Of a stretch of 64,000 nucleotides of DNA, positions 11,799 to 53,900 are shown one piece after another (the stretch's first letter is position 1; each line of letters begins with the position of its first letter). A program made the position numbers and the translations under genes. Source of the DNA: Podarcis filfolensis (taxonomy: Eukaryota); the NCBI GenBank assembly GCA_964270895.1, contig OZ185439.1. One strand, given 5' to 3'. Under the pieces are notes generated by a model, which ran no database searches, was not told the origin of the DNA, and worked only from the letters and a program-made list of their open reading frames with translations.

Positions 11799-12270
11799 TG
11801 TTGATATCAAGCCTTGTCATTCAGAGGCATTTGGCACTCTCCAGGTGCCCGGCTTGATTCCTTGTTGGCCTCCCCCGTCAGCGACTCCCGGCAAGACAAG
11901 GCGAGGTCTTTATCGGCCGATCCTTCTTCAAACGTGAGAAGAACACAGCCACTCCTCCTCCCTCACTCCCTGCCATCCCCAGGGAGGGGAAAGAGACAGA
12001 CAGAAATGTATTTACATGCCTTTATTTCTGTCTTTCCTCAGTGCAGAGAACAACATGTCTGCACTCTCTGATACCCAGCTGCAGAGTGAGAAATAACTCC
12101 ACCCATGTACTTCCAGTACAGGGTCATGTGACACTCTGAGCTAACATCCGGTGCTCAGTGCACATAATAGACTGTTCCTTGTTCCCACGGTACAGTCCCA
12201 AAACATCAACATCCTGTTTGGCTTTCCAGCCATCTGGAGCACTCAGCAGCATTGCTCCTTTTTCGTAACA
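11799..12270 (-). repeat. 3' LTR of Copia-type element (472 bp)
   Basis: Direct repeat of 14831-15302, preceded on minus by the PPT; AATAAA on minus at 12021-12026. Confidence 0.95.
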
Positions 12271-14130
12271 ACCTCCCCCAAAAGAATCAATGCGTGTTGC
12301 GGCAAGCAAAGCGTGATCCAGAGAAGAAAACAAACAGTTGTTATACACATAACACTCCCCTGTTGTTTCAGTTCCACCCTTGGAACTACCCGCCACTGGT
12401 TTCCCCAGTGTACCTCTCTGGTTGTCTGGCTTCCAAGGAATGAGTGCATCTGCATTACCTTGGCTAGCAACTCTCTGTTGTGTCTTTGTCTCTGACTTAG
12501 ACACAGCTCCAACCTGTCCTCGGTTGTGTACAACAGCAACACATGCAACAGCTAAGTTAGCATACTCTTCTGAGTACCTTTTGGGTGGTTCACCCTTTGT
12601 GACTCTCACAGACCTGCGTATGAGGTGCTGATCCTCTCTGCTCACTGGTTCTGTCTCAGGACTCCTAGGAGAACCAGTTCCAACAGTAAACAGTGGTTCA
12701 ACCTTCACCTGTGAAGGTCTATCCATTGTGTGAGATTTCCTCTCAATGACTGTGACAACAGAGCTCTCTGAGCTATCACTGTCGCTCTCAGTACCACTGT
12801 ACTCTGTGAAATCATCATCATCATCTGAATCGTCCTCTGTGGGAAATGTGTGTGCTATCACTCTCTCCTTTTCAGGAGCATTCTCTAGAAATTTTGTGAG
12901 AATCACCTGACCAGATTCAGACAAAATTACTCTGTAGAGACCCTTTTCATATCCCACAAAAATGCCTCTGGCATTCTTTACTCCACCTGGAGCTTCTGTC
13001 CTCACATGAGACCCAAAAACCTTGAAATGGGCAACAGAAGGTTTTCTCTGGAACAGTTTCTCAAAAGGAGAACTTCCCAACTCTTTCGAAACCTTTCTTA
13101 CCCACGCATAACTAAACGACATGAGTGACTCCGCCCAGAACTCATGTGGCAGATGTGAACTAAGCAATTGCGCATTCATTCCCTTTTGCAATTCTTTGTT
13201 CACTTTTACACAAACACCCCTGTTCCACGCTTCCGCTGAAACAGCAATCTTGTGTCTGATCCCCTTCTTCTGCAGGAACCTCTGGAAATCCTGTAAAAGA
13301 AAAATCTGCTTCTCATCTGTCAAAAGACAATCAATGTTAGCATCATGCATGTCTTTAACCTTGTCACAAAACTCTTGAAACCTTTCCAAGGCTTCCTGTG
13401 GTTTCTTTAACACATAAACCCAGACAAAGTTAGAGAAATGATCCACACACACAAGATAAAATCTTGCATTGCCTCTAGATGGTTCTAGAGGACCAATCAC
13501 ATCAGCATACACCCGCTGAAACGCTCTGTCGACCCTGGCCACCTTCTTGGCGCTCGTTTTGGTCACACCTGCAAGAGAAATCATGTTAGACTCAGAATTA
13601 CATTCCATGTAATCACTTTGGTCAAAAGTCAACAAATACAGTCCATCTTTCTGTCTGGCAGAAAGATATAACTCTCCATCTTTGAAGATCTCGCAGCTCT
13701 TATCATCATAGGACAGTCTCAGTCCTTTCTTTGCAATCTGCGAAACACTCAGCAGATTGAACTTCAGTTCAGGAACCAAGTAAACATTGTGTATTGTCAA
13801 GTTCAGACTCTTAAGATAGACAGTGCCAACCCTGGTCGCTTCCAGCTTCTGACCGTTGGCTTGTTCCACAGCGAAGCTTTGCTTCTTAAACGTCGAAAAG
13901 AGTCCTCTGTGCGGGGACATATGAAAATTACAGCCCGTATCGATTACAAAAGAGTGTCCAACATCTGGCGTGGTTCCTTTCGCCATCAGGGCCTTTGCAG
14001 GTTTCACCGAAGACTTGGTATGACCTTTGCCTGCTGCCTCAGGCTTTGCTGAGCGGCCCTTCGCTCCTTTCGGCTGGCGTGGCTTCTTGCAGTTCCGCTG
14101 AAGATGCCCAGTCTGTCCGCAATTGTAGCA
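12124..14130 (-). CDS. Copia-type polyprotein ORF: CCHC knuckle, aspartic protease, degenerate integrase + SH3-like domain, acidic tail; no RT/RNase H (first ATG at 13986)
   Basis: CYNCGQTGHLQRNC (14089-14130, in frame upstream of the tracked ORF); FVIDTGCNFHM; NVYLVPELKFNLLSV; VYADVIGP; LLTDEK; FKVFGSH...GIFVGYE..YRV; IRRSVRVTKGEPPKRY. No YxDD motif. Confidence 0.88.
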   Translation of the reverse strand, partial: CYNCGQTGHLQRNCKKPRQPKGAKGRSAKPEAAGKGHTKSSVKPAKALMAKGTTPDVGHSFVIDTGCNFHMSPHRGLFSTFKKQSFAVEQANGQKLEATRVGTVYLKSLNLTIHNVYLVPELKFNLLSVSQIAKKGLRLSYDDKSCEIFKDGELYLSARQKDGLYLLTFDQSDYMECNSESNMISLAGVTKTSAKKVARVDRAFQRVYADVIGPLEPSRGNARFYLVCVDHFSNFVWVYVLKKPQEALERFQEFCDKVKDMHDANIDCLLTDEKQIFLLQDFQRFLQKKGIRHKIAVSAEAWNRGVCVKVNKELQKGMNAQLLSSHLPHEFWAESLMSFSYAWVRKVSKELGSSPFEKLFQRKPSVAHFKVFGSHVRTEAPGGVKNARGIFVGYEKGLYRVILSESGQVILTKFLENAPEKERVIAHTFPTEDDSDDDDDFTEYSGTESDSDSSESSVVTVIERKSHTMDRPSQVKVEPLFTVGTGSPRSPETEPVSREDQHLIRRSVRVTKGEPPKRYSEEYANLAVACVAVVHNRGQVGAVSKSETKTQQRVASQGNADALIPWKPDNQRGTLGKPVAGSSKGGTETTGECYVYNNCLFSSLDHALLAATRIDSFGGGCYEKGAMLLSAPDGWKAKQDVDVLGLYRGNKEQSIMCTEHRMLAQSVT
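12271..12279 (-). promoter_or_regulatory. Polypurine tract
   Basis: GGGGGAGGT directly abutting the TG of the 3' LTR. Confidence 0.85.
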
Positions 14131-47910: not shown

Positions 47911-50900
47911 CACACACACAGGGGGAGCAAGGAAAAGGGGAGGGAAGGTAATTACCTTCAGGAAAGCGTGAAACCTTGGCTTCTGTTTTTCGCACTTAGT
48001 AATCATTTCCTTGCTCATTTCAAAGAAGTTCACAAAAGGAGGGTATGTTTTCAGTAAGTCTTTTGACTGAAAGAATGCAGAACTTTCATTTACAACAAGC
48101 ATAAAGCTGAAGTGGAAAAAGGTAATTTTAAAAATTGGTCCTTTACAGCTTAAATATACCATCAGGCCCTGAAGTATTTTCAGTCACCACTAAACCAGCT
48201 AAGAGGCACTCCACAGCAGCCTTCCCCAACATCTCTGAGATCTACAGGTGTAGGGCAGTATACAAATGCAACAGTACAAGTGTGCAGTGCAAAACTTTGC
48301 TCGATGTTACTAAAACAAGCCTTGAGGCTTCCCCAATTCCTCCAATTCCAGGGGGTTCCTCCCCATGTGCTATGCGAGCACTCATGGTAATGCAGCCAGT
48401 GTTGAAGACTTACATATTTGAGTATGACATCACCAATGCTTTCGCTTTCAGTCCAGTTTATCATAAGGTCTTCAAGGTCCTCCTAGAAAATAAATGACAT
48501 ATTGCCTATTAAAAAAAAATTACAATTTGTAAGATGGAAAGTTATATTAGCATCCTGAACTTATGCATTTTTTCTGCTCCCAAATAGCCTTTAATTTAAA
48601 GATACGTAATGAAGGTGCTTATATACACTGAGTGTAGATAAGCGATTTCATTACATATATTTAGGCACCAGGAAAAAAACATTTCTCTTCAAGCAGGCAT
48701 TCAGCAGATTAACATTCTATGGCTTTTTAAATGTGGGGGGGGTGCTATTGGTTTGTTTTTCTTATGTATTTTTAATTCTCATTTTGTTTCTTTCTGTTGT
48801 GAAGGTTACTATACAAATGTAATTAATGATAACAATGACAATTTGATACCACATTTGGAAGCAAGGGAAAATATAAGCACCCTTATTTTTGGTATTATGC
48901 CTGATGTGAGTCAGTTTCAGGGAATCTATTCATGAACTACAGTGGTGCCCCGCAAGACGAACGCCTCGCAAGACGAAAAACCCGCTAGACGAAAGGGTTT
49001 TCCGTTTTTCGATGCGCTTCGCAAGACGAATTTCCCTATGGGCTTCCTTCGCAAGACGAAAGCCCATAGGGAAATCTCCAGGACAGCGGGGAAGCGCAGC
49101 GCGTCTTCCCCACTGTCCTCGGACCTCTTCCGAAGGCTGGCGGTGGGGCGTAGAGACCTCCTCCCGCCGCCAGCCTTCGGAAGGCTCCTCCGAAGGCTGG
49201 CGGTGGGGCGGAGAGACCTTCTCCCCGCGCCAGCCTTCGGATGGCTGTCCTGAAGACTTGCGGTGGGAGGAGGGTTTTCCTTCCCACCGCCAACATTCAG
49301 AATGCTGTTCTGAATGTTGGCGGTGGGGAGGAAAAACCCTCCTCCCACCGCAAGCCCCGGGAACAGAGGAGAAGCGCTGCGCGCCTTCCCCTCTGGTCCC
49401 GGACCTGTCCTGAAGGCTTGCGGTGGGGAGAAAAGCCCTTCTCCGCACCGCCAGCCTGGCAAGCGGTCTCCATAGGAACGCATTAATTGATTTTCAATGC
49501 ATTCCTATGGGAAACCGTGCTTCGCAAGACGAAAAACTCGCAAGAAGAAAAAACTTGCGGAACGAATTAATTTCGTCTTGCGAGGCACCACTGTATTGAA
49601 CTGAAGAGTGTAGAACAAATGCTAAACTTGCAACTTCAAATTCCATTTTCTGTCCTAAGTTGTTCCAGACATGCATGTTTCCCCAGGGCGGCACAAGCAA
49701 GTTAAAACTCGGGAGTAAAGCAACACAGATGAAAGATCTGCATTGTACAAGTCTTGAAGACAACCTTTATTTTGGTGTGTACATCAAGGATGTCAGGGAT
49801 ACTGCCAAATATGGTTTTAATTTCCTCTGGTGCAAGAATGGGGCCCCCAAGCTGTCCTTCCTTTTCCAAGGGGACTTGAAAGACCTGGAAAAAATGAAAA
49901 CAGCAATACATTTAATACCACAGAGTCATCTTAATTGGAAGGCTGCACTCAAGGCAGATTCATGCTCTTTGCAGTAGGTAACAATTTCCCTAAAACCACC
50001 TATTGGCAATTATGGGCTGGGCCAGGTTTACCGTGCCAAGATGCTGCCGCCTAGTAGTCACTCCCCTTACCCCCTTCCCTAAACAATAAAAATGAAGGCT
50101 TTCCTAGTACCCATATGAATTGATGTTGGTTCAGCTCTGTCTGCATTACCAACACCCAAGTGACTCAGAGCAGTGGTTCTCAAAGGATGTGACGCACCAC
50201 AGAGGTGTGACAGGAGAGGATGGCAAGGGTGGCAGTAAGATTCAAGGACAATCAAAGAAACATTTAAACATTTCAGTATAGTATAGTATAGTATTTCTAA
50301 AACATTCTTATTTGCAAAATACGGATCAATATCTTTTTCTAAATGAAAGGAAGAGCATCAATGATACCAAGGACAACCTAGTTGCGATCCAGAAACGCTG
50401 TTCGAACCGAGTGCTGGAGAAGACGCATTTATAATTACCGTATTTTTTGCTCTATAAGACTCACTTTTCCCCTCCTAAAAAGTAAGGGGAGATGTGTGTG
50501 CGTCTTATGGAGCGAATGCAGGCTGCGCAGCTATCCCAGAAGCCAGAACAGCAAGAGGGATTGCTGCTTTCACTGTGCAGCAATCCCTCTTGCTGTTCTG
50601 GCTTCTGAGATTCAGAATATTTTTTTTCTTGTTTTCCTCCTCCAAAAACTAGGTGCATCTTGTGGTCTGGTGCGTCTTATAGAGCAAAAAAAATGGTATA
50701 TTTTGGAAATGATTCGTGTTCTAATGCAGCTGCATTGTTTCTGACTTTCTGGATTTCTGCATCAGCGCTAACATAACTTCTTGGCAGGTCATGTTCAGGC
50801 ACAGACCTGTCACTCTTTGGCCCCTTCTCACAATGGCACTCCAATAAAGACAGCTGCTGACTAGGCATGGTTGTCAGGTTAGTCTTTAACATATGGAAGA

Positions 50901-53900
50901 TGGGTGGGCCCAGTAAGCGGTGTAGGAGCACCTGCTGCTAAAGCACTGAAGATGAGCAAGCATGAAACCAATCACTCATCTGGATGGGAGAACTGAAGGA
51001 TCCCCATGTAAAAAAAAAGCCTATTTAAACCTCAGTCATATGTGCATGGTAGACAAGTGCCAGGAAGCACAGGCAAGCCATAACTTCCTGGCGCATGACT
51101 GCCTCCACATCACATCCTTTGCAGACACACCTCTCCTTATCTGACATGAGACACACACAACATGCAGACAACATGGTTGCCGTGTAAGGTGCCCGTCAGC
51201 CCTCAGAGGGCACTTACTGCAATACTAGTTGTAACAGAGGCCCCTTATAATGGATCTTTTTGGAAAGTGAGGTGCTACTGATTTGTAGCAAGTTTTCATC
51301 AGGTATAGGGGGGACCTATCGACTTGCCTGGATTATGGTTGTCAGGATATCAACATAGTTGCTCTCCGTCTGATACAGCTCCTTCGCAACCTGCCATCTC
51401 GCAGACTGCTTTGGCAGAAAAGGAGTCGAGTTTTTGGACGGCTTTGCACATGATTTTGGAGTTTCTGTAAAGGATGGAGACACAAGACGTAAAAATTATT
51501 TATTTGGGTGTTTATTTGTGGGGGTTTTTTGTTTTTTTACAAGCAGGAAAACTACCATGGATTCTTAACAGGTGATCTATTTAAGACAACTGTTTCCATC
51601 AGATGTGTTAATCCATTTTAAATATGAAGATTTGAGTGCTCTTCCAACTTCTTAAACTCGCACAAAATAAAAACTTGCTTGAACAGGAAAAGCCCTTACT
51701 TTCTGTGCCACCATGCAAGGTGAAGTTCTATCTACCACTTTCTCTCTGCGCTATTATAATAAAATAGCCAATGCCCATTATTTTAGCAATATTACGGAAT
51801 ATACCCAGAATATTTTGATACCAGAATTTTTTTTTGTATTCTATTGTAGAGAATTGCCAAGGATCTCGGGTGCAGAATTTATCAGGAATCTGAACAGCAC
51901 CTAGTTTACCTTATTTCCATCAGTAAGATGTCTCCACCTCTACTCTTGCTGAGACAAATTTGGTTCACCTTGGAAGTCAGGTGCCACAAACGGATCCAAT
52001 CTGTACTTTGAAATCACCTTTAGTACACAACTCATGCCCCAAATTAAGTTCTGCATTACCTAAATGGTCACTGCAATCTAAAAAATTTAAGGAAATTTGC
52101 TCATCATCACCTTGCGATGTTCTCGATACATCTCTAACTGGATGATGTTCGCATAAGACAACATCTTTCAAAATTGGAATGGAACGGAGGCTTACAGAAG
52201 TTTCCTTGCTTTCGACTGGGAAAATAATGAATTTCTGAAGATTCATTTGAGGTGCTTCATTAACTAGGCTTTCAGGTGGCTTACTGCTAGCTGCCTTGAT
52301 GGTTTGTTGCAGATTTTCTAAGGAGTTTATGCAACATTTACGAGCAACGTTATCCAGAGGAATACATCTGGAAAGCCTGCATGATTTCCTCCTCATCCGA
52401 CTAAGTCTATAGAAATGAGAGTTGCCCTTCTGTCTACCAATATCCACGTTCCTCAATTCTATCCTGCTCCCTGTATAGTATTGAGAAGGGAAAAATCAGT
52501 TACTCGTGTCAGTATTCAGAAGTGTTTTATTTTTGCCACAACTATTAAGTGACACGGAGCTGGTTTTGCTTTACCTCCATTAGTTATGCCCGATTCAGGA
52601 GTATTGGAAATATCAAGTAAGGATCCCATCGAAAGGGAATGCTCAGCTGATGGCCGCTTCCGAGGTGGGAAGGGAGACATGTCTGCCTCTCTGGTCAGCT
52701 GAGCAAGGGTCTCTCTTAAGCGACGTTTCTTCCGGTTGCTATTTGGAGTATTCAGTGAAAGTTGTGAGACAGACGTTTTCAGTTCAGGACTATCTAACTG
52801 CAATGAAATATAAACATTCAGATAGTTAACTGTACTCCTTCTCTACAGCTTAGAACCACAGGAAGCTGTAAAATCCTGCTACTGAAATGAATTATTGGTT
52901 TCGCTGTAAAGCTTACTATAGCCCTTCAGGAAGGCCTTGAAAACCCAATTATTTTTGCTGACTGATTCTTTAGTAATTATCTTCTGCCATTATTGAGTTC
53001 CTTTGAGGTGATGGTTTTTCTTGTGGGGGAAAAAGTGTTTTATTTTTGGGCTGGATGCACATTTATTACTACTCAAATTTTCACAGGAGGCTTTGTATTC
53101 TATTCTATTTTGTTGTTAGAAATTGCACTTCAGTCTCTTATTGGTCTAGATCACATGACAGATTAAACCATGGTTTAATATGCACTATGGTTTAATGGGA
53201 ACAAATAGCATGGTGGTGCACACTGCTCAAAAGTTTCTGCACTGCTGCTCCCACTAACTAAACAACCCAGAATCTGGCTCATTACGCTGTCAAAACCTGT
53301 GCTTACGGTTTTTTCTCTCCAAACAAACCATGAGTGGTAGCTAAGCTTTGTTCTTGGTTTACCTCTCGTGGTTTGTTTCGGGGAAGGAAGCCACAAGCTC
53401 TGGTTCAGATGACATGACAAGCACAACTCTGCCTTGTTTCGTCTCTGGCGCAGCACCAGGGGAGGAAGAGTGCCACAAGAGCTTCTGAGCTGCGATCTGC
53501 TGCTTGTTCACATTAAACCATTGTTTGTATTAAACTATGGTTTGAGTCAACTAGTGAACCGGGCCACTGCGTAAGCTTCCCTAATTGAGTTTTACTCATA
53601 AAAGTGTCCATACATGTTTTACATAAATACAGAAACAAAAAATGCTTTGACACAGTTAATGGAACTGAAGTGTTTAAATATCATCCCAAAATTCCATCTT
53701 CTATTTCATTAATAAGCTAATACCAAGAATTGCCCAGTTTAAAGATCCCATTCTGGTTCTATAAATTGCTTTCAATATTCTAGATTTCCTTCTGTAGTAG
53801 CTCACCTTTTCAAAAAGGTACATGGATTCTCCAGCTTTGGCATCCATCTGAATGCTTCCCCAAAACCACTAGAGGGAGAAAAAACGTTTTCTGTGATTTG

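Follow-up and report, generated by a model that had tools for sequence, protein, structure and literature searches.

A probable 360-nt alternative coding exon in the BRCT–DH linker of the cytokinesis regulator ECT2 in the lizard Podarcis filfolensis

We analyzed a stretch of 64,000 nucleotides from the lizard Podarcis filfolensis (NCBI GenBank assembly GCA_964270895.1, contig OZ185439.1; hereafter the window, which contains no N), in which the gene ECT2 is oriented along the minus strand. Within the intron between coding exons 11 and 12 of ECT2, window positions 52470–52111 very probably constitute a genuine, alternatively included coding exon. Its inclusion adds 120 residues (G-SRIELRN...VSRTSQ) to the protein. 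Both inclusion junctions were found in contigs of a close relative, the skipping junction was found as well, and the segment is stop-free with a length that is a multiple of three. The cassette is a fast-evolving exon in the linker between the BRCT and DH domains of ECT2 and is variably included among samples of relatives. For the coordinates of all features see Table 1.

A run search found no run recorded as RNA for the window species itself, but it did yield assembled contigs of close relatives (organisms A, B and C) and raw RNA-seq of organism B. Four of these runs were mapped to window positions 51300–52850, namely X1 (organism A, contigs), X3 (organism B, contigs) and X23 and X24 (organism B, raw stranded reads). 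Record 7 of X1 (1635 nt, depth 16.8) contains exon 11, joins position 52575 to 52470 and runs on to 52131. A 104-nt GT..AG intron is removed in this contig ("skips 104, CT..AC" in the plus-strand view). No other X1 contig contains exon 11, and this one represents the inclusion form. The second junction, from 52111 to 51464, is present in records 2 and 6. Short X1 contigs stop at 52111 and continue with TTTTGGAGTTT, which in reverse complement gives the first bases of exon 12; conversely, the loose end of the X1 exon-12 contig at 51466 reads ...CGAGAACATCGCA in reverse complement, which is the end of the cassette. Since the X1 contigs join 52575 to 52470 and 52111 to 51464, the exon is delimited to 52470–52111.

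For organism B, a minor X3 contig covers 52111–52477 at a depth of 6.5 and the main X3 contig skips from 52575 to 51464 at a depth of 222. X23 and X24 contributed three skip-junction reads each, with zero depth on the cassette, and all of their read pairs were oriented as expected for minus-strand RNA. Two intron stretches, 51508–51871 and 52496–52547, had zero depth in all four runs, so that the RNA coverage resembles an exon rather than pre-mRNA. Inclusion is apparently the predominant form in X1 and amounts to ~3% or is undetectable in organism B. Further RNA samples were approached by a run search in which exons 11 and 12 alone account for at most ~0.20 of the sampled words. Thirteen runs guessed to be RNA (three organisms, four studies) reached word shares of 0.25–0.37; because these shares exceed the ceiling of ~0.20, all thirteen probably hold part of the cassette region.

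The exon lies in an open frame of 172 codons (52495–51980, minus strand), bounded by a TAA ending at 52496 and a TGA at 51979–51977, whose peptide reads GSRIELRNVDIGRQKGNSHFYRLSRMRRKSCR... The acceptor ...ttcccttctcaatactatacag/G (slash, exon boundary) is located ~25 nt from the start of the open frame with 52470 as the first exon base. The joint between exon 11 and the cassette is in phase 1 and forms a glycine codon (G+GG). An initial annotation, made from the letters alone, had described this frame on the gene's strand together with its phase-1 acceptor, a branch-like taactgat upstream, two phase-1 donors (AAG/gtgatg and AAG/gtgatt) and the peptide. All of these are present, the translation agrees, and the acceptor is used in X1 RNA. 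The same annotation had placed the exon end after 52018, which would give 453 nt and 151 residues. Of the two junctions this model predicts, the one from 52575 to 52470 was seen in X1; the one from 52018 to 51464 was absent from X1, X3, X23 and X24, and the RNA instead uses AAG/gtgatg, the other donor named in the annotation, joining 52111 to 51464. The 453-nt model was rejected for want of such a junction. What stands of the proposed non-mammalian long isoform is an in-frame insert in the BRCT–DH linker with RNA junctions on both sides, at a size of 360 nt and 120 residues.

The length of the open frame was discarded as evidence. It had been assigned a chance probability of 5e-4, but this is a figure per frame position without multiplicity. 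When the window is shuffled with an order-2 Markov model, a run of 173 or more open codons arises 1.15 times per 64 kb on average in the six frames, and 68% of the shuffles contain at least one; in the real window, seven runs reach 172 codons or more. A chance open frame with fortuitous splice-like motifs, neither spliced nor coding, would fit this frequency of about one per 64 kb, the absence of a Pfam family for the peptide and the zero depth of the raw reads of X23 and X24 on the cassette. It is nevertheless extremely unlikely, given that both junctions occur in spliced X1 contigs, that X1 and X3 RNA coverage is confined to the exon, and that six sequence clusters preserve the frame and splice sites, with all indels (insertions or deletions) in frame. 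We consider the feature real because of the RNA junctions and the cross-species conservation of the frame; the length of the open reading frame (ORF) alone is not beyond chance.

To this conservation an exhaustive HMMER search with the 119-codon peptide against 1.84 billion representatives at 50% identity contributed exactly six matching clusters, each covering most of the cassette and each represented by a short, unnamed open frame from Logan or ENA contigs. Altogether, ten open frames in six sequence groups match the peptide, with 38–97% identity to the cassette: P0001 and P0007 (96–97%), P0002 (62%), P0004 and P0008 (61%), P0005 and P0009 (55%), P0003 and P0010 (49–55%) and P0006 (~38–39%). 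Since the frames continue past the donor, these homologues are unspliced read-throughs and can be used as genomic samples. P0010 opens with the ECT2 exon-11 sequence MSPFPPRKRPSAEHSLSIGSLLDISNTPESSMANGG, followed by a short intron and the cassette; with exon 11 directly upstream, it represents the same locus in its species. Protein searches by word index, run with the peptide and with two profiles, cover 0.55–1.75 times the query length and so leave full-length ECT2 isoforms outside; they returned nothing beyond short unnamed open frames.

The splice-site contexts are shared among several of these sequences. The acceptor context ..SNYAG/K (gcag/G) is kept in P0003 and P0010, and the donor context Q/GD (G/GTGAT) in P0002, P0003 and P0010. 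In P0004 and P0005, judging from the codons, a G/GT one or two codons later would fit as the donor. P0002, P0003 and P0005 reach the end of the open frame 11–14 codons beyond the donor. Within the cassette at least 10 length differences were counted, every one of them of whole codons. The intron between exon 11 and the cassette measures 111 nt in the species of P0010 versus 104 nt in the window, a frame-breaking difference of 7 nt. Stops or frameshifts in relatives, which the initial annotation had named as evidence against an exon, were not found among the ten homologous open frames, a set that was itself ascertained by open frames. In a neutral simulation with substitutions only, the probability that 119 codons stay stop-free was 0.11, 0.07, 0.05 and 0.024 at 62, 55, 50 and 38% amino-acid identity, respectively. 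A comparison of X1 with the window gave two differences in 360 cassette bases versus 12 in the 203 bases that follow the donor (Fisher p=1.6e-4); one of the two is synonymous and the other changes Ser to Pro. Five of 226 bases differ in exon 11. For P0004, identity to the window drops from 61% within the cassette to 39% along the read-through tail.

Several observations weigh against a genuine coding exon in the window species. The junctions derive from close relatives (exons 98–99.7% identical) and not from its own RNA. The X1 and X3 sequences are Logan contigs; that they represent RNA is a guess for which the removed introns are the sole proof here, and contig depth is a poor gauge of inclusion. 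The raw reads of the two bulk RNA runs are without inclusion, with just three informative junction reads in each. Amino-acid constraint is weak, with 49–63% identity in relatives whose introns can still be aligned in part. In P0004 and P0008 the cassette has diverged more than the tail, and species with a broken frame could be under-represented in the homologue set.

Some of these points would also suit an exon that is spliced but young and neutral, included through splicing noise or drift that a disordered linker tolerates, with the frame kept since broken versions harm an essential gene whenever they are included. Fast amino-acid evolution (38–63% identity), predicted disorder, an inclusion of ~3% or below detection in organism B and the behavior of P0004 and P0008 are all compatible with it. 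It is at odds with the apparent prevalence of inclusion in X1, with a nucleotide divergence that is lower within the cassette than in the bases following the donor, and with the basic cluster and the motifs LQK..FP.E.KE and P(V/I)LK, which are kept in all lineages. On balance we regard this explanation as unlikely and retain that of a genuine, alternatively included coding exon.

A Pfam scan of the 119 codons of the insert yielded no family, and among look-alikes in the ESM Atlas the best score was 0.84, under the useful range. An AlphaFold2 model calculated from an 11-sequence alignment had a mean pLDDT (predicted local distance difference test) of 51.6 and a pTM (predicted template modeling score) of 0.10 with essentially no secondary structure, which points to a disordered segment. 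The most conserved motif is a cluster of basic residues followed by Ser or Thr, RLSRMRRKSCR in the window and RRRRKS, MRKRS, MRRKS or WRKRHRAT in relatives. It could be a site for a basophilic kinase or a patch resembling a nuclear localization signal (NLS). The other best-kept motifs in the alignments are SLE.LQQT, LQK(F/Y)..FP.E.KE, P(V/I)LK and EHH.

An origin of the exon from a fragment of a transposable element was also considered. Retroelement remains do occur elsewhere in the window (pol ORF at 12127–14007), as do several palindromic repeats in the neighboring introns. A self-search of the 64-kb window, however, revealed no further copy of the exon at the DNA or protein level. The peptide lacks a Pfam match, six matches among 1.84 billion representatives do not make a multicopy family, and P0003 (near relative P0010) sits at the ECT2 position. 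We regard such an origin as barely conceivable.

Beyond the donor used in RNA, the open frame continues into a read-through tail, which is covered only by contigs of depth 3–4. X1 records 3 and 4 and X3 record 9 cover 51907/51910–52140 at depths of 3.4–4.1. Their loose ends, at 51907 in X1 and 51910 in X3, continue for 128–180 nt with sequence that had no match in the 64-kb window (up to 3 mismatches; blastn-short). The continuing sequence is common to both species and contains an internal inverted repeat, CTTCAGC...GCTGAAG. The break may equally well reflect a splice to a further exon or unspliced RNA running across an indel or insertion that sets organisms A and B apart from the window species. 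The second reading is favored by the break points lying 3 nt apart in A and B and by the divergence of this stretch, which is like that of an intron. In the stretch 51952–52075, six of the ten listed differences between X1 and the window are A>G on the plus strand, which is probably ordinary divergence and less probably a trace of edited antisense RNA.

The initial annotation had also raised the possibility of a poison or truncating exon that passes the TGA and is spliced at a donor near 51909. If such a read-through form, spliced near 51910 or retained, were the relevant product, it would be a target of nonsense-mediated decay (NMD) or yield a dominant-negative protein of BRCT domains plus linker without DH-PH. 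The low-depth contigs do extend to the predicted region, and in two species they break at or beside AAG/gtaaac. Their depth, however, is 4–5 times below that of the cassette in X1, their continuation is absent from the window, and the offset of the break points fits an indel in unspliced RNA equally well. The divergence is intron-like (12/203), and the frame is lost past the donor in P0002, P0003 and P0005. The TGA at 51977 is reached only by this candidate form; the 360-nt form in RNA is in frame and stop-free, and hence is not a poison (NMD) exon. We consider the read-through form very unlikely as the relevant product and the in-frame 360-nt exon the one to be retained.

The identity of the flanking exons was established by sequence comparison. 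Exons 11 and 12 match residues 194–265 (E 8.5e-33) and 268–312 (E 2.3e-17) of the human ECT2 chain 6L30_A, and the two matches are contiguous along the human chain. A Pfam scan of exon 12 gave a weak match to RhoGEF (PF00621). By these matches the exons are those of ECT2, a RhoGEF of BRCT–linker–DH–PH architecture, and code for the NLS-bearing linker and the first part of the DH domain. The coding end of exon 11 reads ...NSNRKKRRLRETLAQLTREADMSPFPPRKRPSAEHSLSMGSLLDISNTPESGITNG with the donor ATGGAG/gtaaag at 52575, and exon 12 opens with the nucleotides AAACTCCAAAA. The intron after exon 12 is of the GC-AG type, with the donor CAG/gcaagt (51326–51327) and the acceptor ttccag/G (49885–49886); the joint of exons 12 and 13 across it is present in RNA contigs and raw reads.

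Table 1. Features of the ECT2 cassette region, in window coordinates.
Feature	Position	Strand	Description
Alternative cassette exon	52111..52470	minus	360 nt, phase 1 to phase 1, no stop; X1 junctions, X3 contig
Basic cluster RLSRMRRKSCRLSR	52367..52410	minus	most conserved motif; Ser/Thr directly after the basic residues in most relatives
Intron, exon 11 to cassette	52471..52574	minus	104 nt, GT..AG; branch-like ctgac/taactgat; polypyrimidine tract ttttcccttctcaatactatacag
Donor used in RNA, AAG/gtgatg	52105..52113	minus	last exon base 52111; contig loose ends
Downstream phase-1 donor, AAG/gtgatt (no junction seen)	last exon base 52018	minus	within the read-through tail
Intron, cassette to exon 12	51465..52110	minus	zero RNA depth in bins 51508–51871, all four runs
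Read-through tail of the open frame	51977..52110	minus	holds donor AAG/gtgatt (after 52018) and TGA 51979–51977; behaves as intron
Donor-like AAG/gtaaac	51905..51912	minus	match to the window ends here in low-depth contigs from two species
ECT2 exon 10	ends 53806	minus	GAAAAG/gtgagc; joined to exon 11 in RNA contigs and reads
ECT2 exon 11, constitutive	52575..52797	minus	NLS-rich linker ...NSNRKKRRLRETLAQL...PPRKRPSAEHSLSMGSLLDISNTPESGITNG; phase-1 end; RNA contigs and reads
ECT2 exon 12, constitutive	51328..51464	minus	encodes (E)TPKSCAKPSKNSTPFLPKQSARWQVAKELYQTESNYVDILTTIIQ, DH domain start
ECT2 exon 13	starts 49884	minus	joined to exon 12 in RNA

Repetitive elements were noted at other positions of the window. 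A retroelement pol remnant on the minus strand (12124–14130) consists of a 668-codon stop-free run with a 627-aa ORF and Pfam matches to Pol_BBD, a retroviral SH3-like domain and an integrase core. At 49083–49457 lies a GC-rich array of mutually palindromic units of ~60 nt, with arms of up to 80 nt that are 74–94% complementary; this array yields chance open runs of 167–192 codons on both strands (48910–49504). The intron after exon 12 contains a near-perfect hairpin at 50533–50611 (35-nt arms, 97% complementary, 9-nt loop), and the intron between exons 10 and 11 an element at 53165–53543 that resembles a miniature inverted-repeat transposable element, with 46-nt inverted arms (83%) around 287 nt.

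ECT2 acts as the central activator of RhoA in cytokinesis, and its BRCT–DH linker is a control point for Cdk1, Plk1 and nuclear import. An intron of 104 nt separates the cassette from the preceding linker exon, which bears the NLSs and the phosphosite SNTPES. In the protein, the insert is located 8 residues after the TP of this motif, which we take to be the human T412 site, and ~25 residues ahead of the first DH helix; the rest of the frame is unchanged. Phosphorylation by Cdk1 at T341 and T412 relieves the intramolecular inhibition between the BRCT and DH-PH parts, and binding of Plk1 to ECT2 requires T412 (PMC3442911). Based on this position we propose the following role. A disordered insert of 120 residues would give the autoinhibitory BRCT module a longer tether to the catalytic DH-PH module, and it would supply an extra basic patch with an adjacent phosphorylatable Ser or Thr. 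By these means, we infer, the insert may affect ECT2 function by tuning the strength of autoinhibition or the nuclear or cortical localization in those cells, tissues or stages that include the cassette.

A bolder version of this proposal would make the insert a module of the squamate lineage with high inclusion in particular cells (e.g. germline, embryo or regenerating tissue), in which the basic cluster with its Ser/Thr acts as a new switch of autoinhibition or nuclear sequestration under the control of a kinase or importin. We hold this to be speculative and distinctly improbable. If it were true, these animals would possess an isoform of a cytokinesis guanine nucleotide exchange factor with distinct regulation.

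The gene agrees with human ECT2 (6L30) in its exon architecture, and the skipping isoform of the lizards reproduces the human exon join. The inclusion isoform differs in that it carries 120 additional residues exactly where the human chain has nothing between the two exons. In the literature, the human exon-5 cassette was the sole alternative exon of ECT2 found, and nothing relevant on ECT2 isoforms of lizards or reptiles was found. Human ECT2-Ex5+ (PMC7049692) likewise contains an in-frame alternative cassette that changes the N-terminal regulatory half and leaves DH-PH untouched. This cassette, described in mammals, is far shorter than that of the lizards and lies elsewhere in the gene, reportedly in the N-terminal BRCT region and not in the BRCT–DH linker.

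The lizard cassette shares most features with the general class of lineage-restricted exons in disordered linkers, namely a stop-free length that is a multiple of three, fast amino-acid evolution with a kept frame and kept splice sites, predicted disorder, short conserved motifs and an inclusion that varies between samples. It is unusually long for a cassette exon (360 nt) and is located in an essential cytokinesis regulator beside a mitotic phosphosite. As a type of feature, a frame-preserving, lineage-restricted cassette in a disordered linker is ordinary; its size and position are of moderate interest. The corrected exon (360 nt, donor after 52111) would be useful in annotating this and related lizard genomes; the cassette may well already be part of automated gene models. 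Beyond annotation, a natural isoform that separates the T412-type site from the DH domain by 120 additional residues would be a ready-made test of how tether length and added motifs act on autoinhibition, and it would illustrate that an essential, highly conserved gene is able to carry a large, fast-evolving, lineage-restricted coding exon.

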